64,000 bases of DNA, taken from the NCBI GenBank assembly GCA_003693705.1, contig RBZT01000312.1, positions 62,001 through 126,000 on the forward strand, given 5' to 3'. This document shows, one piece after another, positions 27,751 to 44,565 of the stretch; position 1 is the stretch's first letter, and the number at the start of each line of letters is the position of its first letter. Origin of the DNA: Polymyxa betae A26-41 (taxonomy: Eukaryota; Protista; Endomyxa: Phytomyxea). Position numbers and translations under genes: made by a program. The notes under the pieces were generated by a model. The model made no database searches. It was not told where the DNA came from and saw only the letters and a list, made by a program, of their open reading frames with translations.

Positions 27751-30700
27751 ATGAATGATGGCGACGAATACCACTCCGATCAAGATATGGACCTTGGAGG
27801 ATTCCAAGGCAACCTTCCGCCGCCGCCGCCGATTGCCAACACTGAAAGAAGTCTTTCTTCGAATCCGATGTTGAATGATGCAGCAGCACATGAACCTGAA
27901 AGCTATGCCCCTTTTTCACTGGAACCACTCAATGAACAAGATGAGTCAAAATCAGAGCAAAATTCCAGACCTTCACAATCATCAAAGGTTTACTACGCCA
28001 AACTGTCTCTGAAATGTTTGAAATGCGATTCAGAAAATTTTTGATTTTCGTTTCGGAAAAATTCCCGAAGGCGTAAATGTTATTGTTGGAGGAAATAGTG
28101 ATGGACAGGCTGTTCTGGAAACACAAGCAGACCAGAGCACAGCGCTTGTTATTCCTCCTCAAGCGCATCTAGACTTGACATGTAAATCACATTGCCAATA
28201 ATTAAGAATTTTCTTAACGCATTTGCCAGTGGGTTGGAAAGAAGCTGCTCCCTATCTAAATGACTACACTATTGTCATGGACGTACGATTAGACACGCTT
28301 CCTCGCGATTGCCTTTCCCTATATGAAGCGAATGATGCCCGCCGAACTGAGGGTAGATCTGACATTCGATTTCGTAATTTCCTGTTTAAATTGCTCTCCC
28401 AGGAGAATGTTTCATCTCCAATCACGGCGGTGTAGGGATTTTTGGCGAATATGGAGTGAAAAATGCAGAAATCAAACCAGGAAGATGGCATCGTATAGTT
28501 GTAAGCCGTTAAATACCGTTATTGTGTTTCTTGACTTCTGTTCAGATTTCTTTTGGAGCTGATAGAGGTCCTGTCCGTCGCATGAACACCTATGTGAACA
28601 GTGAGCCTTGTGCTACCATTCAGAAAGGCGTATTTGATATTCCTGATAACCGTTTCGCTTTATCCGCTCAGTCATTGAGTTTGTTCAAGTCCTCCAGGCC
28701 TGAATTTCAGCCTGGTATTCGTGTTCGTTATGTTGAGGTCCAGATTGGTGCTGCTTCAAAAGAGGTACTGATAGTTTCACTGCCGATGGCTTTCACATTA
28801 ATTTTTGCAGAAAGTGAAGCAGTTTATAAACGAAAATCGAATATTCAGCTACTGGGAGGTTCAAAGAGAACAAGGTCTTTCTTTTCGGCTCAGCTCTTGA
28901 TTTTGCCAACTGATTTGAACTTGCAGATGAGAAGAGAAGATTTCAGGGTTTGTCCCTTCAATCGCTCTACAAGCGTCCGCCTCCTATTTGGCTACATCCA
29001 ATGTTTCTTGGTTGGTACAATTCAAGAGGCTTTCCAACTTTACCAAGCATTTCGTTTAGGGATGTTTGGAGATTGTCACCTAGGTGGGACGGGACTTGAT
29101 ACCGGTATGCTTACTCTCCTGAATCAACTGGTCTGTCATTTACGGCTGCAGGATCATCGTTGCATCCATGTATTACTGTAATGGATTTGATTCTGCATGG
29201 GATTCTCTCCAATCGGCAAGACATGCTATCCATGTTTAGCCATGAAGATATGCAAAGTCTTACATCACTCCAATCCATTTTGTCAGACGGCTCCGTCGTA
29301 TTCAAAAAAGTACCTTACTGCCAATTTGATACTGCATGTACCCCATTATTTGACGTAGTTCGCCAATGCTTGCCGGAATACATCGCAGATGATCCAGTTT
29401 ATAAAATGGTTCAGAGGAAGACTTGTTGCCCTCAAAGATGGAGATATTATGCTCGCTCCTTGCGGGATTTCTGCCCATCCAATCGTTTTCATTCTGGTTC
29501 GGAAACCGGATGGGTTTCTCGTCGTGTTTGTGAATACAGATCCAGAAACCGGGCTCAATTATCACCTTTCTAATGCCAGGGAGGAAAACAAAATCAAGTC
29601 GGTAAAGTATACAAAAAGATCGCTACATTGACACTTTTGAAGATTCAAAATGTGTATCGCCTTCGATAATGTTCCCGCCAGTCAAGTCATCAACGATGCC
29701 TTTTGGGCTGTTGCTTTCAAGGGTCCCGTTGAACAATCCAAGCATGATACACCCGATAAGGTCTGTATGTTGAATAGTTTCGCAGCTCTTTAACTTAAGA
29801 AGACAACCAGGTATATGAAATACTATTACCATGGCTTTCGCAGAAGCCGGTAGAGTGTTCAATACTTGAAACGGAGGATGATCCAGCAGTTGGTTGGCGA
29901 ACGCCGCAGCGATCTGCCATTCCTGCCTTTAGAGCACTCCATGAAGCTTCCGTTTATATCTTGTCCAGCAAAGGCAAATTTGCGTTCTTGAAACTGACAT
30001 AGAAACTGACTTGCCAAATTTGTAGGATTGAGCAAGGAAAAAGTTAAGAAAGTTTTCTTTGCGATTAGATTGCAAACTATTCTTCTGCTTCAAAACGATC
30101 TCGCCCATATGCCTTCCTTATCTGATGCAGATAGCAGATTGATCCGTTTGGCAGTTGAACAAGTGAGTTCGTTGCCTTTTTGGGGGTTCTCGTTACTGAC
30201 TGATATGTGTAGGTGGCTTACACTGCTGCGAAAATTATGGACTGTTCGGATAAGGCAACTTTGGACGCTAAGAACTTCATTCAAATCAAAACCATCTTAG
30301 ATCAGGTTAGTGTTATTATCAAGTAACAGCACCAAAACTCATAATGTCTGTGAAGATCGAAGAGAAAAGGCGCTCACTTCCAGCTCATGAAATCTCATCA
30401 TACAGCGATCAGGTTCAGATTGATTTTGAGAGAGGCAGCGACTCGAAATGGCAGTCACTGTTGTTACCGCATTTTGAAAGGCTGATTCAAGAAGATGTTC
30501 GAGGACTGGCTGGTTTCCCAACCAGAATGCCAACGTAGAGACCATTATTCTCTGTGTTTCACCATAATAACTGCTCGCTAGATACGTTCCAGTAGATATG
30601 CTGCAAATTCCTGAACCGCCTGCAAAGACGTTTCCTGAATGCGTTGCTGCGTTGCGTCATACAGACAGGCTCTGCACTTTAGTAATGGTCCAATCCAAGA

Positions 30701-33700
30701 AACACATTCGTCATGCAATCTTCATGATAACTGCTCTGATTGAACACACGTTCCTTCACGTTCTTCCAGCTCCTTTACCATTAGATGATCGTAAAGATGT
30801 AAGCGAAACATTAATTGTAGTTCGTGTTTTACTGAAACCGGCCGAAGCAATGCGTGTGGTCGACTCCAATGCTGTATGCACAGCAGCTTGACATTCTTCT
30901 GCTTTGCCAGCGAATCATGGAACATTTTGTCGCCACTGCATTTTCACTGCAACCAAATCGCTCTCTTGATGCCACAAAGCTGGTCGTCTCGGGGTGTATC
31001 ATGGCGATTGCCGACCGCGTTATGCGTGTGATGGCAACCGACATTCCATCAGAGGTATAGTTCTTGTTTCAAGCAGCCTGGCAATGACTTGCGACTTTAG
31101 GTCTCACTGAATTTGCACGCTCACGGCCATCGACAAGCGCTGTTTGCGCCAACTCTTGGAAGATTTGCTGAACAGGTTGTTAACTGGTCTTCTGTGTTGT
31201 ATTTTTCTCTGATTCTTGCAGACCTCTGAAGTTCTCGTTTACTACCCGGAGCTCGTAGTTGCACGAACAGCTGTGCTTCGATATTTCGAGTATCTACAAT
31301 CAGGTTTGCTTGAAAATGATCACTGTCATTTTTCTAAAGATGTTGTCAGTCACTCTCGAGACCAACCTGATTTTCGATTGGGAAAATGGTAACGGTGTCC
31401 AGCAAGGAACGTGTCTTCTAATCGAGCAGGCAATCTTCCGTTTAATTTGTTTTGATTCCAACTGAGGCTGCTTTCAGATTTGTGCTGATTTAGCTTTTCC
31501 TGTCGATAATCTACCAGCGTACGTTTCCGGAGAATCGCATCTGATTCAGAAAAATTATCCGGAATGGCCCTGCTATCGCGATATTTCATTTTGGTACTGA
31601 GGGGTGGAATGACCTTTCAACGTTTAACCGGTGTTTTATAGGTTCAAATATTTCCAAAATACAGATGAGAAGTGCTTTCCGCCCGTTCCGATGCAGCCGT
31701 ATGTTCAAAAGCAGGCATGTCTGGAATGGGAACTTGGGCAACAGGGATATACGGTTGTTGCATTCCGGATGCCAATTCAATGTCGGCCATTAAAAGGTAA
31801 AGGGTTGCTTTTACTGTGTAGTCTGCTCATTAAATTTGTAAAGGACCCTTTACGGAACGGTTTTCATCACCATCGAAGCCTCATTTGCTCACTGCACCAC
31901 ATTCGGTCGAGACAGAAGATGATGTTCTTCATGTGAAAAATCTTCCTACCTTTGAGGGTGCTCTTGGTCAAAGGGATTCTGAGCTTTTGATTTCGTATTT
32001 GACTGTCCCTTATATCCGCATTCCCTTGTTGCTGTACGTATATGGAATCTCGATGGCCGCTAAGTTCATTTTCTGATGTTGTGCAGGACCTTTTTCTCTA
32101 CGCATGATCGCATTCACTCGTTGCGAAATCCAAAGCTTCGTGAGGTAATTCTTCTGCTGTGTATGGTCTCAGAACTAATGTTCTTTAGCTGCTTGATAGC
32201 GCTTTGTTCGAACCCGGGTCTTATTTGCAGGGAAAACTTTCGAATGTTGCACCAACTTTAGTGCCAACCGAAGAAAAGGAGCTCCTCTCCACTGAATACG
32301 GCTACTTGCTTAACGAATTATATCATTCACCTCAGCGTGTCATTGAGTCGATTACCACTCTTTTAAAGCAAGCTCTGGAACTAGACACTGGTGTTTTTGA
32401 CCCTTCAACATCTGACATTATCCTATTCGTCGTGACCATCGCTAGTCATGTTGAGAATTACATCGCGTTTCTTTTGAAATCGCACCATCAAGCCTCCGCC
32501 AACACCCTTCTGAAAAACGTGAATCTTTCTGACTCCCAGCAAAAGCTGCTATTATCTGGACTCAATTCGATTTCGTCACTGCTACAACACCAGTTCAGTG
32601 ATCTCCTACTGCGATGGTTCTCACAAGTATATTCGACCGTAACAGAAGAATCCATCGACGAAATGACCAAAATTGCCTGCACAGTTCATGCTCATTTACT
32701 TCTAATTCTTCGTAACTCCGAAGAGTTTCCTCCCCAATTTATCGAACGTTTCCTTTCAAGCTTATTATTTGTTACGACCAGACACAGCTGGAATCTGAAT
32801 CTTTTACCGATTCCGGAAACCCACATCTTTGAGCTGCTCACCTTCTGCCAGAGAAAACTGATTGCGACATTGAAATGTCTTCCAAAACAGGTTCTCAATC
32901 AGACATTAGATCATTCTATTGCCACAACAACACAAACCACCCCTTCGACTCACCGTCAATGGGCTTTCGTAGCTGGACCTCGATCTATTGGTAGATATAC
33001 AGTCGAAAGTCATCCAGAATCTACTGGTAACACAAGGTGATCGTTCGCTGCCATTTTGATGAAAATTTTTCGCTGCAGATATAATCGCCACCGTTGATGC
33101 CCAATCGGGAGAGCTCGGAATCGAGATCGACGTTCAAAGAGCGCAATTGACTTTCTGCAATGCCCATCTTGAAGCGTTACAGATATCTATTTTACTGGAT
33201 CCCGATATTCAGCTGGTTTTTGGCGGTGCAAAGTCCATTCAGGCTGCAATGGTCGAAACCGCACAGCATCGAGATCTATATGAGTTAATCGGCCGCGATC
33301 ATTCAATTGAGCATTGGTAATTATGAAAAACCTCTTTTGTTAGGAGCTCATAGTTACAAAATGTAGGAAGACAGCCGACGAGCGTCCCGGCTTGATTCCT
33401 TTCGAGACGCGTGATTATTCTCCTGGAGATCTTGAGGACTCCGAGAGATGGATCGTCAATATATTCGAGCCTATACGTCTCTCGTCAGTCCGCTTGATTC
33501 CAGTGTCATTGACAACTAATTAGTGACAGTTATTTCATGAAACCTGTCCCCATCCAGATTGTGATGTCTGCGGATATCACGCCGTCTCAGGCAACCGTTG
33601 CGATATTGTACGCTTTGCATCCTATGAACGGTGGTGCTTGGAAAGAGATTCATGTTCGTCGTGAATTCTGTGAAGTTTTCGATCTTGTGTCACATGGGCG

Positions 33701-36700
33701 AAGGATATATCGCTCTCTGGTCTACACATCTGATTCGAGGTTTTCTTTGCGCGATTTGCAACCACCTCCAAAGAACCGTGATTTTCCATGGCAACCTTGG
33801 GAGAGGCATGCCGCAGGCCATCCGTTAAAACCAGCAGCTAGTGAGTTCTGTTGTTTGCCTGATTTATCAATAACGTCTCGGTTAGATCCGATTTCGGTTG
33901 TAATCATTCGACATGTTGATCACGAGTCCAATAAATCTGGGGACGATGAAATGTTTATTCCGGCCCGTCTTTTGGACGGAATCGTTCCATCAGCGCTTCT
34001 GGATAAGTTCTTGTTTTGGCAAGATAAAGACAATAATATTCGTGGGTATATGTTGAAAAAAGGCAAGGATATTTCTGATCACGTCGTATTTATCCGGCTG
34101 GTGGATTCTCAACAGGTTGGGCAAATCGTACGTGGAAATTTGTTCTCTAAAACCTTGAAGATCAACTGCACTGGGCTGCCGGGTGTTGGGGCTATCATCA
34201 CACGATCTTTAGCAATCCCACCATCTGGAGCGGTCACGAAAAGTGACCAGACGTTGCGATTAGTGAATGCATCGTTCGCGCCCGAAGGAAGCATCATTTC
34301 TGATGTGAACAAAGTGCTGTCTCGGATCGAACGAAATGCTTTTACTTTGATTTGGACTACTGCATTAGTTGAATATCCAGATTCAACTATTCAGGATCAA
34401 TCGATTTCAAGGTGCCCCTTGAAATCGCTTGTTATTGTTGGGTTTTGACCGATGTCACAGTAATGAACTCACTATCGACTTGATCGAACTGCCCCGTTTA
34501 AATATGAGTTTCTCTGTTAAAGAGGATATGGACGGTGTCAAGCGCCTTTACAGCGATGATCACGTGTATGCTGTTATCTTTGCCATTTCTAAGTTAATTT
34601 TAATTACTCATAGGAACTTGTTTGTGTCAAACGAACGTTCTGTCCTCACAATGTCGTTGATTGCTGGAATTCCTCATTCGCTTTTACTATCGAATGAAAA
34701 CAACGATATTCAAGTTCTTATTCCTGTAGTGATCATGAAGCACGATTTGACAGCCAGCTTACGATTTGTTTAGGCTGTGCCTCCTATACGGCCAATCATC
34801 AGTTCATCCCCATTCTCTACTGAACTAGTTCTTGTTAGAAATGACCCAACGTGGTACCAAGCCTTTGATGTAACCTACTTTGTATATCCAATTCGTAAGA
34901 AATCATCTGTTGATGTTGTAGTCATCTGATTTTCTTAATCAGATGTCAGTCTATCGTTTATGTTCACCCCGACACTATCTTCGGCGCTCTATCTATTGCT
35001 GCTTCGTATTTTGCATCGTGACTACCAACAAGTCATTCGTCTGAGTATACAGCCACTCTGCTATCTGAGACAGCGTTCTGATTTGTCGTTAGCAAATTCT
35101 ATCGGAACTGATACCGCATTTTCCAAAGAGGAATCACAGATCTTCCAGCTCCTGGCGCAAAGTGTTTCAGATTGTGCTCCAGATTCTCACGCCTGTCGAC
35201 TTCGAATTTCTTATGTCACAATTGATAGTCCTGTTGAGTGTCCTTGGCTGCTAACGAAGGAGCTGGCCAATTACATCATCAAATATGCACATGTATCAGC
35301 CACATGCCGCCTCACTTTGCAAGAGGAATTTCAGCTGTTACAGCTTGCAATTACAGATTTGTCGGATGCTCGGTTTGATCCGAAGATTTATTCAGTGCTC
35401 GAAATTTACACAGTTAAAAATCGTCGCAGCAGAGTTCAAGCAATTCTTGATGGTGAAAGATCCGCTAAAGCATTCAGTTTGCCCGCTCCCGAGCGTGGTC
35501 TCAGCACAACTGCATGGCCCTTTTACTGTGATATTTCAGCTATTGCTGCCCAAGACCAAGATTTTGCTGATCTGATCGTCCATTATGCTGCGAATCCGAT
35601 GATATCTGGTGATACCGTCATGAAGACGATTAGCGGATTTTGGACCCGTCAGGAAGATATGTCTGGGCATGCTTTGCAATTAGGGTTCTTATTCATTTAT
35701 GGCCTATTAACTGTATGTCTGTCGAACTGTTCGGAAGCTGTCATCTGCTCATATTCTTCAACAGGGAACAATTACAGCTAAAGTATGTAACAACAACGAT
35801 TCGTTCGCTTTAGCATCGATTCTTCTACAAACAATGTCAGATAGACATGTTCAGTCGATCATGTCGTCCATTCTCCATATTCTGGTTCAAAATCCAGAAC
35901 TTGTCAAGATATGCCCAAAGTTCATTGATAATCGCCAGTTCCGCACCGAGCAGATTCGCTGCGTTGGCGACGTTCATTCCCCTGTCTCGCCACTAGCAGA
36001 ATTGTTCAGGAATTGCATTCCAATCCTGCTTGCAAATGTCGAATCTTTATGGAGTCCACCTCCGCTGCCAGAACTGCCTGGCTCAATTGCTGTCGAAGTG
36101 AAAGTTCAAACTCTGAAACAGTATTCGGATCTCTGGTAAGCAAATCCGGGTGTGTGATCAACTGCTAAGCTGCCCTACAGGCCGATTCCCGCAATCTCCG
36201 ATTTCTCTTGTGCCTCCAGAAACATTCGTTGTGTCAGTCGAGAGGAGTTACCTGAACAATTCAAGGACCTGGCTCTATCTGCTGCTGAGCTTGAGGCTCT
36301 AAGTGACGCGCCGCTAGCAGGTGCTATCGATTTGTCAGCGTCTATTATGCATCAATCGAGATCGGAATCCGGCCTTTCCATGGTTCCAGATGAGGTATCA
36401 ATACTGTAAACTGCTTCCTGAATTCTCAACTCCATTTCAGCTTTCTTTTGATATCTCTCGGCATCCTGAAGCTCAATCTGCGGTTGCACGCTCCTTGCTG
36501 GATCGTCTTGGAAATGATTTGAAATTGTATGCGGATTTCGAGAACAAAGGAATGTTTGCAAAGTTCAGGCCGATCGTTGAGTTGGAGGCTCGTTTGCTGG
36601 AGAAGTCTTGCGATGAAGCTGTAGCTGGTAGAAGTGTGTTTGTCGCCCTTCATCATCGTCTGATATTTCCACTCAGATGTTGGTGATCTTTATTCTGTCG

Positions 36701-39700
36701 TCGAGGGCCTCGGCGTTACATTAGAGGCACTCAGATTTGCTGACAGGTTTGTGATCTGATATCACTGCAGGTTAGCAAACATTAATTTGTGTGATTTAGT
36801 GATTATGTCCGATTGGCCTTGGAATCCTTGATCGAACTGAGCAATAAGGTGGAAGATCCTTCTCATGACGTTTCATTGTCTCGTTGCATGTTCATCTTCC
36901 GTCGTTATTCTGGAGCTCGGTCTTCTATATGTACAGTCAGATGCCATTTGCGTTCTCATTTGACCGAAACTTGTAGGGCTTGAATTCGTGTTTGCCTGCC
37001 TTCTTTGTTCTGACGCGAAGCGCGACTTTTGGACTTTGAATCCGTTCCTCTCGGAATCAGAGGTTGAGCTTATCTTGCAGATCTCGATGGCAGCCATTCT
37101 TCATGCGAACCGAATCGGACAGGTAGACTGAAATTTGTTCGTAGAATGGCCCTGTAAAGTGCATAGATCAACCGCTGCTTGAACCATGTTCGAGCAATTT
37201 TATCGTGTCTGAAGTCGTTGTCGACGACTCCAATGGATGACACGTCCAGATCGATTACAGCGCTAAAGCAACAATCTGAGATGCTAGCTAAGAACCTTGG
37301 TGCGAAACGATATTATATGACGAATGCAAGCAGTAAATTTGCAAATGTACGGCTATGCCGCCCTAGACGCAACGTTAATCATTAAATTGGTTGACAGGAT
37401 GCGTTCCAGCTTGATCCAAGATATCTTATTTTTGAGTTTACTTGGAATTTACAGCTAAGAAAGCAGCAAATCGACCTCGTTCAAGACTTTATGCAGTCAT
37501 TGGAACAAAACAAATCTCTTGTTAAACAGGTTTGTCGGTTGGTCTCTTTCATTCCGATTGTTTAACTCTATTTGCTCTGTTTAGATGATCATGGGTGCAG
37601 GCAAAACTACTGGTATTGTGTAACGATTCGCGCCATTTCAACGAATTCATTTACAACAGTTGTTGGCCCATTACTGGCGCTTATGCTTGGTGACGGCAAA
37701 GGTCTTGCTGTGCAGGTTGTCCCACCAGCGTTGCTTGAGTTTTCTCGTGGAATAATGCGCTCGACTTTTTCCTCAATTATTCATAAGCGTATCTATACTC
37801 TAAGTTTCGACCGCAATTCCAAAGCAGACGCCAATTTGTTGAACAAACTCGAGAACTGTCGCAAGACCCGCGGCGTCGTGATTTCGACGCCAACATCGAT
37901 TAAGTCGTTAATGCTGAAACTTATTGAATATCTGGATTGTCTTAACAGTGATGATATGATTATGGAGCACGGAATCCTTGATGAAGTTCAGATTTTGCAG
38001 CAGATTATTTCAATGTTCCACCATGGCACTCTGATTATGGATGAGGTTGACCTGCTGCTGCATCCTTTGAAGTCAGAATTGAATTTCCCAATTGGAGCGA
38101 AAAAGCCGGTCGACTTTGAGCCTCATCGGTAAAGTTTTCATCTTGCCTATGATCTGTCATTGACGATGCGCTTTTAGATGGAAATTACCAATCCATATTC
38201 TTGATGCCTTATTCTACGCTGAACGACAGAAGATGTCGGTTGGCTTCAAGGAATCGCGCCGTGCTTTTGTACTTCTGCAGCAGGTCCAACTCTGCAGTTG
38301 TAGATTTCTAATCATTCGTTCTAATCGACTCTGCAGATTCGAAAGGTCGTTGAGGAGGGTTTCGAATGCCGCGCCCTTCAAAGTATCCCACACTTGGTTC
38401 TTCTGGATCCCGATTTTTACCAGGTTTTCATGCAATCATTTTCTAACGATTCACTGTGGTCTCAAAAATTCTTTTAGGTTCGCCTTAAACCTCTCATGGT
38501 TGAATGGACCATTCTTTGGCTCGAATCACAGCACTTGTCAGGCTTGCCTGAACAGCAAGTAAAACTGTATCTATCCGCAGAGTCGCTTGAACAGTCAATG
38601 GTCCAGTTTTCAATCTGTTAATAACCCATGTTGTTGATGCGTTTTAGATCGATTTGGTCAATCACCATATAGCCCCGCATCATAAGAAGATGCTCAACCT
38701 GTCCCGAGACTGGCTCAATACGTTTTTACCACATTGTCTTGCAAAGATTAACAGAATCTCCTTTGGTTTATTATCCGATTTCGATTTTGCCAAGTGGGTA
38801 TCATCATTTGACACGAAAACATTACCTGATAATGTCATTCAGGGCCATCGAAGTAGATCCACACATGCCACGAACTCGAGCCAAGTTAGGCATCCCGTTC
38901 GTTGGCAAAGACACTCCTTCACGCTCCAGTGAATTCGCCCATCCTGATATCATCCTCGGCTTGACCATACTTGCCTACCGATGTTCGATCGCTCAACTTG
39001 GTCTCTTTGGCGCTGGTTCTCACATTATTTCAGATGAGGGGCTTCGACGAAGCGATTTCAACGACATCATTCAGAGCTTGCGTACATCGATGATCAAAGA
39101 AATCGGACCTTTCCATGAAAGGAAATCGTGCCGTCAGTATGAGGCCTGGGTCAATGAAGCAGGAGGACGAATTAAAGGTAGCTCTGATGGTATGAACGAT
39201 ATGGAACCAGAGGTGGTCCATTTACGTCTCCTGAAACCCTCCAATGAGACGCAAATGAACTCGCTGTTCGATCTCTGGCATAAGCTGCCAGATGTCATCC
39301 ATTGGTACCTGAACGAATATATCTTCCCTGTATATCTTCAGCATCAAGCTGTGAAGCTTAGCGAGAGCGGCCAAGGCCTGGGTGGCTCAATGCTATTTGG
39401 TCGTAGAATAGGATTCAGTGGAACTCCAAGGTTCGTCATGCTATCAGATCTCCTGGTTGCCTTGATTGAAGCTGATTCAGTGACCTGCTTCCAATCGAAC
39501 TTGGAAAATGTGGTTATGAGAAGGGTTCGGATGGAAAAGTTGTTTACACCATGACGAACCCAGACGTTGTTCGAGTTCGCTATATCGAAAAGGGATGGAC
39601 TGTCGATTCTCTTCTCAACGTTATCGCAAACGGTGGTGTGAAGTACAATGCGTTGATTGACACCGGGGCCTTAATTACCGGATTGTCGAACTATCAAGTC

Positions 39701-42700
39701 GGTTTCTTTTCGCCCTCACCACACCTGCCTTATGTCCGATCAGGTGGCAGAGTCTCTGCTTCGAAAAGGCTTGAAGGGCTTTGATGGGGTCGCTTTCTTG
39801 GACGACGCCGACCGTAAAATGATCCTGGTTCGAGCTACTGGTCGTGTTGTTAAACTTGACCAATGTGGAATCGATGTCAATCGGCGATTCGTATTCTATG
39901 ATCAAGGTCCTCGCGCTCTGATTGTTTTTGAAGTCGTTAATCTCGTATGAACAGTGCATACCACTGGAATGGACTTCCAGCATGCTTTAGATGCACATGC
40001 AGTGCTTACTTTGGGGAAAGACATGGTATTCAGAGATTATGCTCAAGGCGCCTATCGAATGCGTGGTATTGGCGTTGGGCACACCATCGAACTGCTGATT
40101 ATCCCAGAAGTCTTAACATTGATCAGGCATTGCTAAGCTCTCGAAACCGAAATGCTGTCGTCTGAATTGTCTTTAGGAGAGAGTTAGCAGCTGCTCGAAT
40201 GGACGCAATGGAAGATAAAGCAGAGAATATTTTACATGATGTTACTGCATGGCTCAATATCAACAGCATGAAATCGGAGCGTATTCAGTTCAATCAGCTG
40301 TGCCTCCAGGTATGGATGGGATATCATTGAAAGCGCGGTCAGGATTAATACGGTCCATTTCCAGAATATCGGCAACATTTGGAGGAAGAAAGCCTTTGAA
40401 GCTCTCCTGACTCAATATGACGCTTTCTTGAATGGACCCAACAACCTTCCTGCACAACTGAAAATGTCGTTGGATGTTTTCAAAGAGAAGATCGATTTCA
40501 GCATAGAAGCTTGCGTTCCTCAACCGGTAGAAGCTCGTTTTGTCTGGGATGCCTCTTCGACTTAGTCTGCATCAGGTTTCGTTTTTGGAAACAATTAATG
40601 GGCTTGTAGAAGATAACAAACAATTAATTGTTACACAATCGGAATGGGATATCATCGAGTCAGTTCGTAAATTGAGTTCAACAGTCATTTATGACGATTC
40701 TCAACACGTTTTTAACGCTGAAATGGTCCAGGAACAGGTTCGTTGACTCGTTGCATTATCAGGACGCAAGATATCTGAACCCTTCCTTTTGTTTAGGAGC
40801 AAGAACAGGAACAAGAGCAGGAGCAAGAGCAGGAGATCGAGATCGAGAAATTTGTTGATCTGGCATACAGCCGTGAAAATGAGCGGCAAATTCCATGGGA
40901 GTTCTCCCTGCTCTCCGGCCATGGCAGCGAAAAGCCTCCATTCTATGCTCTTCGTGAGTTCCATTTGGCTAAACGGGAACCCATCTCGTTCCCGTCTTTC
41001 CTTCTGGCGTCAAACAATTATTTCAATCCGAAATGGTCGGGACCCCGTCGTATCAAAAATAGTATGAGATCTGAAAACCGCTGCTCATTCGGACCTAATC
41101 AGTTTTTCTCAGTATCCGTTACGCTTGAATGGTCGCTGTCCTCCTCGCCAGCTTTGGCACCCTCTCACTTAGATCAGCCGATGTCAAAATCCGAATTGGA
41201 ATCGGCTCAGAAAGCTTTTGAACTATTTGATATCGACGGCTCCGGCGATCTAAATGCTGCTGAACTTCATAGCGCGTTACAAGCTGCACTGGATATTGAA
41301 CTATCAACTGATGAACTTATGCAGGCTTCAGGTGCAGCCTGAGACCGATTATCATTGTTCAGGCCTGATTGTGTCTAACAGGAGGCAAGGCCCTCAATTT
41401 TACGAATTTTGTCGAATTTTTGAAAAGTGGTAACTTCCGGCAATGTCACAATTCGGTTCGTCTGATATCCATCATCATCACTCTGCGCTGACTTTGTTGA
41501 ACAGCGATATTTTGTTTCCGTCTCATTGGCCGAAGCTGAAACGATCCGAAAAATTCTGCATTCTGCTCCATCTGAACGTATCCGGATTGCTCTGAGATGC
41601 CTCGACGCTGATCACACTATTCTGGATGCTTCACCCAGTTTCTATCCTACAACTAACTATATGGGCAATGTACCGTATAAGCCTGTTTTCTTATGGCTCT
41701 CTGTTTATCTATTGATTCAGGCGGCGTATGCTTGCTTGCGTTTCTTCAATTCAGATATGTACTTCAACAATGCTGAAATCAATCTGCTGCTTCAGTCACT
41801 TCGAAATTCTACGATGCGCAAGCGTCGAATCTTCTTCCAGAATCTACTATCATGTCGTCGTCGATCGGTTAGATGCTGCTTAATTCGAAAGTTCCATTGT
41901 CCTCTTAGCTCGCTTTCAGGTCCGCAAATGGGAGGAAGCACCCATTGCAAGACTGTTCACCACGCCAACCGAATTCGACCTTCTCAAGCAGCGAGCACAA
42001 TCTTTACGCCTGCGAGCCGCCATTCAGGTTTGTTCATATCAAGGTCATCTAATTTGTTCTCACATTTCTGTAGGCCAAAGGTTTACCTCTGCATGACGCC
42101 TTCCGAATGTTCAATTATGCTCGAAACGGCTTATTGAGCACTGCCGAGCTCTGGGGCGCCTTAGATTGGCTTGGATTCTCGGTTTCAGCTGACGATGTTT
42201 TGGGTAAATTCGTCATTGCTTGAAGTTGCACTTTCCTGACTGACTCTTATTAGATTTCATGAGATCTGCTGATACTGACAAAGACGGGCTGATTTCCTAT
42301 CGAGACTTTTCAGAAATGATTTCCAATACCAATCAAGAAGAGAACATTCAAGAAGCTGACGAGGCAATTATTTGTAGCCCGTCTCATGCTGTAAATACTT
42401 TCATTATCATTGATATTTGTCGTCCTAAATGCGTATATGCAGGAACTGGGACGTATTCCACCGAAAGGAGAAGACCTTCTTCGCCAATTACAGAACGAGC
42501 GTGATCTCCAGGAAGCTCAAGAGGTTTTTTACAAAATATTTCGCCATCTAACTCCACACTTATATGCAAACTAGGAGGAAATTGAGGCTGAACGTGAACG
42601 TAGAGACGAGCTTCGGTAATTTTTTAAATTCTCGCTTCGTAATTTTGAACCGATCAATGTAGAATTCGTGAAAGCTTGATCGCAGCTGCTCTGGAAGAGA

Positions 42701-43698
42701 ACGCTAATCAAGCTGGTGGCAGCAATCCAAAAGTCACTCCAGAACAGGTTTACTACGATTTCACAACTGGACGGCGACCTTTCGGTGTCACTTCCATTGG
42801 TGATATTCGCTACCAACAAGGTCGTTCTCCTTATTCGAAAGTATCCATCGAGCTAAGGCTTTTGCTATATAGATGGTGGTGCCTTTTATCTCACCGTATT
42901 CCATCTCGGCTCACTCTTTTTGCCATTGTCGCTCCCAGGAAACGGTTCCGGAGCTCTCCTCAACCGATATTCAGCTACAATGGAGATACAGTTTGACAAG
43001 CTACCGGTAGATAAAGCGGCCGTTATGACTGTTGATCGATTGCGACCAAATCCAATTGTTGGTAATCAGATAATAGCATTTCCGGGTTCTAAGTGTCATG
43101 CTTAGGCATTGTATGTCAATTCAACAGGGCAACTAGGGTTATCTGAGGAAGATTTTGCAATGAGATCAAATGTGGTTGTCACGCCAAAAAAATGGCACAT
43201 GGTGACTATCGTCGTGGATGTTCCTGGGAAAGCAGTAGCTGCATACATTGATGGAGAGATGGCTTTCCGCAAACAAATTAATGCTGTTGTTGATGGCCCA
43301 TTTGCGTTGGATTCCAAGGTAACGCAGCATGCATGCATTCCCAGGTTGTAAATCAATCTAAAATACTATTACAGATCTGCCTATTCAGTACAGCAGTAGG
43401 GGAAGCTTCGCACGAAAAACACATTCGATCTTTCCTTTTGGATTTGGATTGCCACACTGCAGAGACTGTCAAACTGTTGTATGAGACCAAGATGGAGGAG
43501 ACCAAATGGATCTGTTCCGTTTGTACTTATCGCAACAACCGGACAGACGATCATTGCACAGTGTGCTTTACCTATAATCGAGCAGCTGCTGCAGTATCAG
43601 CTACAGGTAATGGTAGCGAATGGAGCTGTCCGGCGTGTACTTTCAAGAATCCAGCATCGGCAGGGTTGTGTTCAATTTGCGAAACCCCTCGGTCTTAA
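27751..43698 (+). CDS. Giant multi-exon protein (~4,000 aa estimate): LamG-like, papain-like, SF2/P-loop ATPase (DUF3638 + DUF3645), EQ tract, EF-hands, second LamG-like domain, two RanBP2/NZF zinc fingers
   Basis: Same-strand exons separated by ~50-nt introns from ATG 27751 to TAA 43698. Motifs: QMIMGAGKT, LIMDEVD, IPFVGKDTPSRSSEFAHPDIILGLTILAY, GFSGTP, ALIDTGALITG, QGAYRMRG, DIDGSGDLNAAE, DTDKDGLISYRD, WICSVCTYRN..CTVC, WSCPACTFKN..CSIC. Confidence 0.85.
40797..40847 (+). repeat. Degenerate hexamer coding repeat (GARCAR)6 encoding EQEQEQEQEQEQ-EIEIE
   Basis: gagcaagaacaggaacaagagcaggagcaagagcaggagatcgagatcgag at the start of an exon of the giant gene. Confidence 0.85.
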
Positions 43699-43716: not shown

Positions 43717-44565
43717 TTATGTCGCTTCCCGGAGCGTTAATGGGATATCAACGGGCTGAAGTGCACCATCTGGTAGAATTTCCAGGACTTTAATGAAGAA
43801 TTTGGTCGGAATGGGCCCCGGTGATAGAATCACATTGTTGTCGCTGATAAAGAAGGGAATGTTATCATTTATTGACCGGATCGCATCGATGAAAATCAAA
43901 ATTTCGCAATTCGCGCGAATTCCTGAATAACAACAGGCTTCAACAGATGCAACCGAATCGAAATAATGAAAACCGACCACTTTGAACTCTACCGGAATTC
44001 TGCAGTAGTAATGGGCTATCAGCGACAAAATGGATGTGATTTCGACTCATTCGACTTAATCCATTTTGCAGGATAGACGGAATACAGTTCCTGAATGTTC
44101 CATGGACAACAATTGGATGGTGTTCTGCAAGTGGTTGTAGCAGGAGACTGTTATCAATCGAATCGATGGAATGGCCTTGATTGCAACGAATCCAATAGAT
44201 ACCATTGTTATCAGAATACAACGAATACCTTTGCTTGGCGTCAGTTTGTATAATCTGCAGATCGTCAGCAAACAGACTTTCTGATAGCACAGACCGTAAC
44301 CTTCTGTATTCTGTCAACTGTTGGCTTAAACCTTTGGAATTTCTTGTGATTAAGAATTTCGTTCAAGCAAACAAACTGAAAGCCGTTAAGAATACGGCTG
44401 CCAAGCAATCAAACGATGCTTAACTCCATCAGGACGTATTGCAATTCCCATTTTAGGGGCGTCGTGGCGCAGTACTTTCGATAAAAGTTTGCTCAATTGA
44501 ACATCCCTGGCGTCGTTGCGATTACATCTGGATTTTGGAAGCTCTGGTGTTTCAGCGTCACGCAT
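43717..44565 (-). CDS. TPT1: tRNA 2'-phosphotransferase (Tpt1/KptA)
   Basis: LSKLLSKVLRH, KQRY, IRCNQGHS, VHGT, GLSRMSRNHIHF, SGIR, SDNNVILSPG. Confidence 0.92.

Follow-up and report, generated by a model that had tools for sequence, protein, structure and literature searches.

The closest described relatives of the gene reported here are the giant proteins that carry the domains DUF3638 and DUF3645, such as those of Albugo laibachii (F0WWQ5), Bodo saltans, Thecamonas trahens, Vitrella and Chromera. UniRef lists relatives of this kind as 'ubiquitinyl hydrolase 1', and a literature search for functional studies of the family returned passing mentions only. An earlier reading of the DNA (the original prediction) had stated both that these proteins have no demonstrated function and that they are auto-annotated as ubiquitin hydrolases, and both statements are true as far as the literature and UniRef were searched. 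In this work we analysed a 64,000-nucleotide stretch of the genome of Polymyxa betae A26-41 (GenBank assembly GCA_003693705.1, contig RBZT01000312.1, positions 62,001 to 126,000 of the forward strand), referred to below as the window, in which positions 27751 to 43698 of the plus strand are occupied by such a gene. All coordinates are window positions, and features lie on the plus strand unless stated otherwise. From the anatomy of the encoded protein and its relatives we infer, with a probability of about 0.45, that it acts as an ATP-driven motor, directed by ubiquitin and modulated by Ca2+, which would clamp and remodel a polymer bound to it.

Membership and distribution of the family

Database searches, family scans and fold searches were carried out with single window exons or database homologues as queries. 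With single exons, Pfam places DUF3638 (PF12340) at 37566-38129, scoring 74.1 bits against a curated cut-off of 31 (E 1.4e-20), and DUF3645 (PF12359) downstream of it at 38673-39551, scoring 47.3 bits against a cut-off of 25 (E 1.2e-12). A HMMER search with exon 38844-39428 against 1.84 billion representatives found 1,248 relatives, of which 103 reach E <= 1e-30; the closest identity is 62%, and many of the relatives are 4,000-7,000 amino acids (aa) long. When first 17 and then 145 giant homologues were aligned to the window with tblastn, the giants proved collinear with it over 28037-43689. The best full-length relative (P0178) is a complete 4,316-aa transcriptome open reading frame (ORF) from Luapelamoeba hula, with a mean identity of 38.5% over 28040-43680, and the second best is a foraminiferan protein.

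The family extends over Amoebozoa, Rhizaria, Euglenozoa, alveolates, stramenopiles, haptophytes, apusozoans and fungi, with Albugo, Bodo, Diplonema, Eutreptiella, Entosiphon, Paulinella, Amorphochlora, Chromera, Vitrella, Aureococcus, Chrysophaeum and Thecamonas among the named carriers. Clusters retrieved from the ESM Atlas are 88-100% eukaryotic, their commonest phylum being Haptophyta, Ascomycota or Rotifera, and the genome from which the window is taken (27.1 Mb in 1,001 contigs) holds at least one copy. When 185,579 prokaryotic species genomes were scanned with A1, our alignment of 31 ATPase cores, one locus came up, in an 'Anaerolineaceae' metagenome-assembled genome. This contig (PABI01000099.1, 1-9947; 9.9 kb, 65% GC) is a single reading frame of 3,315 codons, open at both ends, that encodes a DUF3638/DUF3645 giant 51% identical to homologue P0004. 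Probably it is eukaryotic DNA that was mis-binned, and not a bacterial homologue.

Judged by its sequence, then, the locus is one gene for a member of a pan-eukaryotic family of DUF3638/DUF3645 giants. The original prediction had taken it for the best candidate for an undescribed system in the window. That description has to be withdrawn, as the protein scores above the Pfam cut-offs of a large catalogued family with 1,248 relatives; this family of 1,248 representative clusters is essentially eukaryotic, and the locus itself is an ordinary case of membership.

The ATPase core

The core of the protein (37167-40737), delimited by Pfam, A1, AlphaFold2 (AF2), Foldseek and VIA-align, is a superfamily 2 (SF2), SecA-like ATPase unit in which two RecA-like domains, separated by an insertion, are followed by a long scaffold helix and a helical domain. 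Its Walker A motif, MIMGAGKTT, is encoded by a 28-nt micro-exon (37585-37612), the Q of QMIMGAGKT being the last codon of the preceding exon, and is followed by Walker B or motif II, MDEVD (38037-38051). Between motifs II and III a mostly helical domain is inserted (38178-39380; Pfam, A1 and AF2), in which the DUF3645 motif IPFVGKD.PS.SSEFAHPD, almost invariant in A1, starts at 38892. Motif III, GFSGTP, lies at 39411-39428 and the sequence LIDTG at 39653-39667, while motifs V and VI share the interval 39906-40067: VHTTGMD is split by an intron (39907-39954), and QGAYRMRG occupies 40044-40067. A low-complexity (EQ)n tract follows at 40729-40832. All motifs named in the original prediction are present at the positions given there, and the SF2 set in the window (GAGKT, MDEVD, GFSGTP, VHTTGMD, QGAYRMRG) is complete. 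In A1 the Walker A, DEVD, SGTP, HTTG-D and QGAYRMRG columns are invariant or nearly so.

For structure prediction we used residues 2940-3890 of homologue P0004, which are 37-61% identical to the window exons, with A1 as the alignment. The AF2 model (predicted local distance difference test, pLDDT, 84; predicted template modelling score 0.83) has a RecA-like domain and, between two long strands, a mostly helical insertion of some 335 residues; after these come the SGTP strand, another RecA-like domain, a 46-residue helix and a helical domain. The original prediction had been made to stand or fall with tandem RecA-like domains, and the core of the homologue does model in this way. At the level of the model, the two-RecA SF2 fold of the core is firm.

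Likeness to SecA

When the P0004 core model was searched with Foldseek, Bacillus subtilis SecA was the top match (E 6.7e-6, TM by target up to 0.43); next in rank were DinG, INO80/SWR1 and MDA5/RIG-I. VIA-align, run on the Foldseek list and exhaustively on 48,161 PDB representatives, gave Z scores of 18.0-18.2 for SecA (434-566 residues aligned, within model residues 4-923) and 17.7 for SecA2 (463; 3-923). Behind these came ALC1 (16.7; 332 residues; 18-822), DinG (16.5; 342; 16-813), Hel308 (16.1; 369; 16-922) and the isolated SecA motor (16.1; 331; 16-775). On this comparison the specific likeness to SecA stems from parts outside the motor, and SecA's lead is modest.

The order of motifs points the same way. 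In Escherichia coli SecA they are GEGKT-105, DEVD-209, GMTGTA-391, GRGTD-508 and GRSGRQG-573, and in the P0004 core model GAGKT-61, DEVD-194, GFSGTP-584, HTTGMD-723 and YRMRGIGKGQ-753; from these positions it follows that a large domain separates motifs II and III in both. In ordinary DEAD-box proteins the two motifs are some 30 residues apart. The core and SecA have the DEVD Walker B in common and appear to share two architectural traits, a large domain inserted ahead of motif III and a long scaffold helix that follows the second RecA domain (nucleotide-binding domain 2 of SecA); the insertion site and the 46-residue helix are both there in the modelled core. Unlike that of SecA, the inserted domain is mainly helical, with about 335-350 aa, and the family protein is eukaryotic, predicted to be soluble and about five times larger, with nothing to suggest a membrane channel as partner. 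No membership of the SecA family was detected by sequence: neither the exons nor the homologues P0004 and P0011 matched the SecA Pfam domains (SecA_DEAD, SecA_PP_bind, SecA_SW), and searches of PDB sequences with two ATPase exons gave no meaningful match. The SecA-like assignment, which the model supports, was not found in the searchable literature and can be tested.

The C-terminal region and the architectures of homologues

Downstream of the core, the protein contains EF-hand loops, a LamG-like domain and a pair of zinc fingers. The first EF-hand loop, DIDGSGDLNAAE, is canonical (41229-41264); a pair of putative EF-hands at 42074-42390 includes the loop DTDKDGLISYRD at 42271-42306 (EF-hand_6 E 0.0027, EF-hand_1 E 3.3e-5). 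Both loops are where the original prediction had placed EF-hands. Since introns divide the domains, Pfam scores taken exon by exon (22.9-25.6 bits) stay slightly short of the cut-offs; in homologue P0004 EF-hand_7 scores above its cut-off at the equivalent place. The LamG-like, or ConA-like, domain spans 42663-43318; Laminin_G_3 matches exon 43106-43342 with an E value of 8.7e-5, under the curated cut-off.

At the very C-terminus lie two RanBP2-type NZF zinc fingers (43498-43695; Trp codons at 43507 and 43621), to which PF00641 matches in two stretches (45.5 bits, E 4.5e-12), as had been predicted. Both have the four cysteines, the W and the N in the pattern W-x-C-x2-C-T-(Y/F)-x-N ... C-x-(V/I)-C, with C-T-Y and C-x-V-C in the first finger and C-T-F and C-x-I-C in the second. 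This T-F/Y plus hydrophobic pattern we take to be the signature of ubiquitin-binding NZFs, for instance those of Npl4 and TAB2.

To what the core is joined in other members was surveyed with the precomputed Pfam domains of the best 120 word-search hits, and examples were spot-checked by hmmscan. Over half of these homologues (64/120) have EF-hands and 52 have thioredoxin-like domains; the remaining modules are Laminin_G_3 (PF13385) in 13, WWE in 11, NZF and MIB_HERC2 in nine each, ankyrin in eight, Discoidin in five, ubiquitin-like, UBA and Vps62 in four each, DnaJ in three, and RING and AZUL in two each. Architectures confirmed by hmmscan include WWE with thioredoxin; UBA, jacalin and fascin; ubiquitin-like and RING; and AZUL. 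A homologue with a ZZ domain had a MIB_HERC2 match just below the cut-off (31 against 33.5 bits). Inserts of the thioredoxin or nucleoredoxin-like type occur in about 40% of the 120 (P0011, P0099, P0261, P0265 and others) and DnaJ in a few; both are missing from the window protein. Ubiquitin-system modules, one or more per protein, are present in 36 of the 120, and, as far as these domain assignments go, different ubiquitin readers and writers are attached repeatedly to the ends of the same core. It is this repeated attachment that provides the strongest argument, by association, for a role of the family in ubiquitin signalling.

A proposed mechanism and its main rival

A possible mode of action for the protein would begin with the C-terminal NZF pair, which, aided by the two lectin-like domains, could dock the machine on ubiquitylated targets. 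Ca2+ bound by the EF-hands that adjoin the motor would modulate it, and the SecA-like motor would use ATP to clamp the bound polymer and pull on it, or remodel it. The client that we favour is a polypeptide, so that the role may be one in quality control or of the segregase type; we favour it because SecA is the closest structure, because ubiquitin, redox and chaperone partners recur, and because none of the surveyed architectures showed a nucleic-acid-binding module.

The main rival holds that the giant is a nucleic-acid-dependent SF2 helicase or translocase, a sensor or remodeller of RNA or DNA recruited or regulated via ubiquitin and Ca2+, for which RIG-I-like receptors, ZNFX1 and Snf2 enzymes would be the analogues. 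DinG, ALC1/INO80/SWR1, Hel308, Hef and MDA5/RIG-I all lie within about 1.5-2 Z units of SecA, and the general SF2 motifs Ia and Ib (VVP.AL, TTP) are conserved in A1. However, SecA and SecA2 head both structure searches and give the longest alignments, and among the architectures of the 120 homologues there was no nucleic-acid-binding accessory domain, the partners being ubiquitin, redox and chaperone modules. We consider this alternative somewhat unlikely.

Several observations weigh against the ubiquitin-directed motor that we propose. The lead of SecA over the remaining SF2 families is no more than about 1.5 Z units, and the structural neighbours include nucleic-acid motors (Snf2, DinG, MDA5/RIG-I), so the class of substrate is not fixed by structure. 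At the sequence level, a search of PDB sequences with the A1 hidden Markov model (HMM) returned nothing, and hhalign of A1 against the single E. coli SecA sequence found nothing (probability 0.2). The structure models come from the homologues P0004 and P0035, not from the window protein, and the searched literature held no experimental data on any family member. Finally, about 1,900 conserved residues of the protein lack an assignable fold, and the real activity could reside there. Three conserved family-specific blocks without an assigned fold were located by tblastn at 30582-35712 (residues 700-1270, 1330-1810 and 1980-2420 of P0004). Together these blocks make up about 1,500 strongly conserved residues, with invariant positions in the alignments A4-A6; they correspond to the 'long helical regions' of the original prediction, and no relatives of them were detected in Pfam, among PDB sequences (profiles A4, A5 and A6) or in the ESM Atlas, where nothing usable came from feature searches that covered 2,200 residues of the middle part.

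The N-terminal jelly roll and protease-like module

The N-terminal part of the gene encodes a ConA-like or LamG-like jelly roll (exons 2-5, 28034-28764) and, behind it, a helical linker with a clan-CE-like cysteine-protease-like domain and cap resembling those of the Legionella proteins AnkH and AnkD (28811-30534). These folds were seen in an AF2 model of residues 1-670 of homologue P0035, built with 18 homologues (pLDDT 77.8), in which the first domain models as a ConA/LamG-like jelly roll and the second has an AnkH/AnkD-like clan-CE fold. The N- and C-terminal LamG-like domains of the window protein are weakly similar to each other (pairwise E 5e-6, 20% identity). The proposal of two such domains is supported for the N-terminal one by the fold of a homologue; its C-terminal counterpart has the sub-threshold Laminin_G_3 match and this similarity.

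In AnkH a clan-CE-like cysteine-protease-like domain with a cap carries the triad in the order His-Asp-Cys, within rGHa, D/NRg and GNCSW (PMC6712400). The giants show motifs similar to these (GGHA, CNTG and GTCYF) in the order seen in AnkH, and a YH motif downstream (29554-29568 in the window) is invariant in the family. The window protein keeps the His (29476-29478), the Asn (29533-29535) and the oxyanion-type Gln, but at the nucleophile position (29922-29924) it has Pro; WRTPQRSAIPAF aligns there with WRSPQRAGTCYF without gaps. The segment had been described as papain-like; a protease-like fold is borne out by the homologue model, but the nucleophilic Cys is gone. It is also absent from most homologues, and in this, as in having no ankyrin repeats ahead of the module, the giants differ from AnkH (6mca) and AnkD/LegA15 (7ew8), neither of which was matched at the sequence level when profile A3 and others were compared with PDB sequences. 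Given the Pro codon at the nucleophile position, the CE-like module of the window protein is most likely a pseudo-enzyme, to judge from its residues. Within the proposed mechanism it would be a non-catalytic surface that binds ubiquitin, a ubiquitin-like protein or a substrate, and not a deubiquitinase.

That the giant might be an active deubiquitinase or ubiquitin-like-protein protease, which the ATPase would supply with substrates, is suggested by the UniRef name, by the AnkH/AnkD clan-CE-like fold and by the complete His-Asn-Cys set found in AnkH-like motifs in three of 18 giants. The triad is incomplete in the other 15, however, and Pro replaces the nucleophile in the window protein. Moreover, no protease activity of AnkH itself was detected in vitro (PMC6712400), and AnkD/LegA15 has since been read as an atypical GTPase dependent on that Cys (PMC9757750). 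LegA7 represents another protease family, the YopT-like one, and was set aside in this comparison. We regard this alternative as very improbable. With the nucleophile lost, 'ubiquitinyl hydrolase', the name used in the database, is an unlikely description of the window protein, and it is probably wrong for most family members. The match to AnkH/AnkD, together with loss of the nucleophile in most members, was likewise not found in the searchable literature and can be tested.

Structure of the gene

The window is eukaryotic DNA of about 44% GC, and on its plus strand stop-free segments with short gaps between them extend from 27.7 to 43.7 kb. The whole gene (27751-43698) was defined by splice-aware dynamic programming, refinement with a homologue HMM and collinear tblastn. 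The dynamic-programming model, which took codon usage and splice sites from the window itself, first converged to one gene from the ATG at 27751 to the stop at 43696-43698, with introns of 43-59 nt, and was then refined against a local HMM built from 10 full-length homologues. In its final form the gene comprises 70 exons and 69 introns, the introns measuring 44-59 nt (mean 49.0), which matches the original description of a gene of about 16 kb with dozens of introns of about 50 nt; it encodes 4,187 aa with no internal stops. Intron boundaries are GT-AG in 66 cases and GC-AG in three (29974-30025, 31430-31477 and 40127-40176). Neither a signal peptide nor a transmembrane segment was predicted in the encoded protein, and its sequence is that of a predicted soluble protein.

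Refinement changed the model at several places. Six in-frame, stop-free introns had at first been read through (33841-33885, 34116-34160, 34566-34613, 35045-35092, 38983-39033 and 41062-41112). Each was a window-specific insertion of 15-17 residues with GT...AG ends, and splicing it out raised the homologue-HMM score by 11-29 bits; at three of the six, the family consensus (e.g. TILAYRYEGLR) was regained. Corrections were also made at four junctions (29310-29358, 30799-30847, 39907-39954 and 43319-43374); that at 39907-39954 restored motif V, VHTTGMD. An intron proposed by dynamic programming at 43607-43663 was rejected as false, since it would delete half of the second NZF finger; the junction alternatives 40252-40297 and 41385-41427 were rejected as well, the homologue-HMM score having fallen with them, and a homology-weighted version of the dynamic programming, which was over-weighted and read through short introns, was discarded. 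The six in-frame introns, being multiples of three and free of stops, look coding and were caught only through comparison with homologues, and models of other genes in this genome, whether made automatically or by eye, may hide the same error.

Two parts of the model have little help from homologues. Exon 1 (27751-27987) encodes an acidic, low-complexity N-terminus whose start codon was chosen by the model without homology support, tblastn of the giant homologues having given no high-scoring segment pairs upstream of 28022. The poorly conserved linker at 35765-37122 has sparse segment pairs, and its splice junctions are those of the coding and splice model. At the other end of the gene, an open frame on the minus strand ends at 43717, 18 bp from the stop at 43696-43698, which suggests that the two are tightly packed convergent genes.

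The thin homology over 35765-37122 is what favours the view that the 16-kb gene is an artefact joining two or more neighbours (for example lectin/protease, ATPase and EF-hand/LamG/NZF genes), but this is hardly credible beside a continuous stop-free frame across 69 uniformly sized introns and homologues of 4,100-4,800 aa that are collinear over 28037-43689 in the same domain order, several of them complete transcriptome ORFs. The best available evidence for a single mRNA is provided by the complete transcript-derived ORFs of Luapelamoeba hula (4,316 aa) and Entosiphon (4,668 aa), which have the same order of domains, and the prediction of one polypeptide is upheld by them. Taken as a whole, the earlier interpretation was partly right: the single polypeptide, the tandem RecA core and the intact ATPase motifs stand, but the undescribed system does not; translocase activity, coupling to Ca2+ and recognition of glycans are inferred functions.

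Significance

These giants are among the largest conserved eukaryotic proteins without known function, and the interest lies in the family rather than in this locus. The analysis gives the family a testable anatomy, namely a SecA-like SF2 motor, an AnkH/AnkD-like module and interchangeable modules of the ubiquitin system at the ends, and with this anatomy proposed, assays of ATPase activity, ubiquitin binding and Ca2+ become the obvious experiments. The CE-like module, as far as its residues can tell, has an intact catalytic set in a minority of members and is dead in most, including the window protein. There is a possibility, suggested by the structural match and unsupported at the sequence level, that the AnkH/AnkD domains of Legionella have a relative in the host. 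In a bolder version, the giants would be the eukaryotic cytosolic counterpart of SecA, with an SF2-type motor, distinct from AAA+ unfoldases, that grips and threads ubiquitylated polypeptides and to which redox (thioredoxin), chaperone (DnaJ) and ubiquitin reader or writer modules were added lineage by lineage; the Legionella AnkH/AnkD domain and cap might, in addition, have descended from the N-terminal module of this family in host amoebae. We consider this combination distinctly improbable.

Comparison with known systems

The original prediction likened the protein to the giant sensors RNF213 and ZNFX1. RNF213 consists of dynein-like AAA+ modules plus E3 domains, and ZNFX1 of an SF1 Upf1-like helicase plus NFX1 fingers. 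The comparison holds only as a concept, that of a giant polypeptide coupling an NTPase motor to ubiquitin-related or zinc-finger modules; neither protein was matched in our Pfam, sequence or fold searches. With the NZFs of Npl4, TAB2 and TRABID the two C-terminal fingers share the four-cysteine RanBP2 type, the W, the N and the signature, here in tandem at the C-terminus; outside the fingers the giant protein is unrelated to these three. It is with the DUF3638/DUF3645 giants that the protein agrees throughout, in its Pfam domains, in collinearity over the full length and in the order of its parts: the CE-like module, the conserved blocks, the ATPase core, the EF-hands and the C-terminal fingers of ubiquitin-binding type. 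Nothing essential sets it apart from them, the member in the window being one without a thioredoxin insert, with LamG-like domains at both ends and with two NZF fingers.

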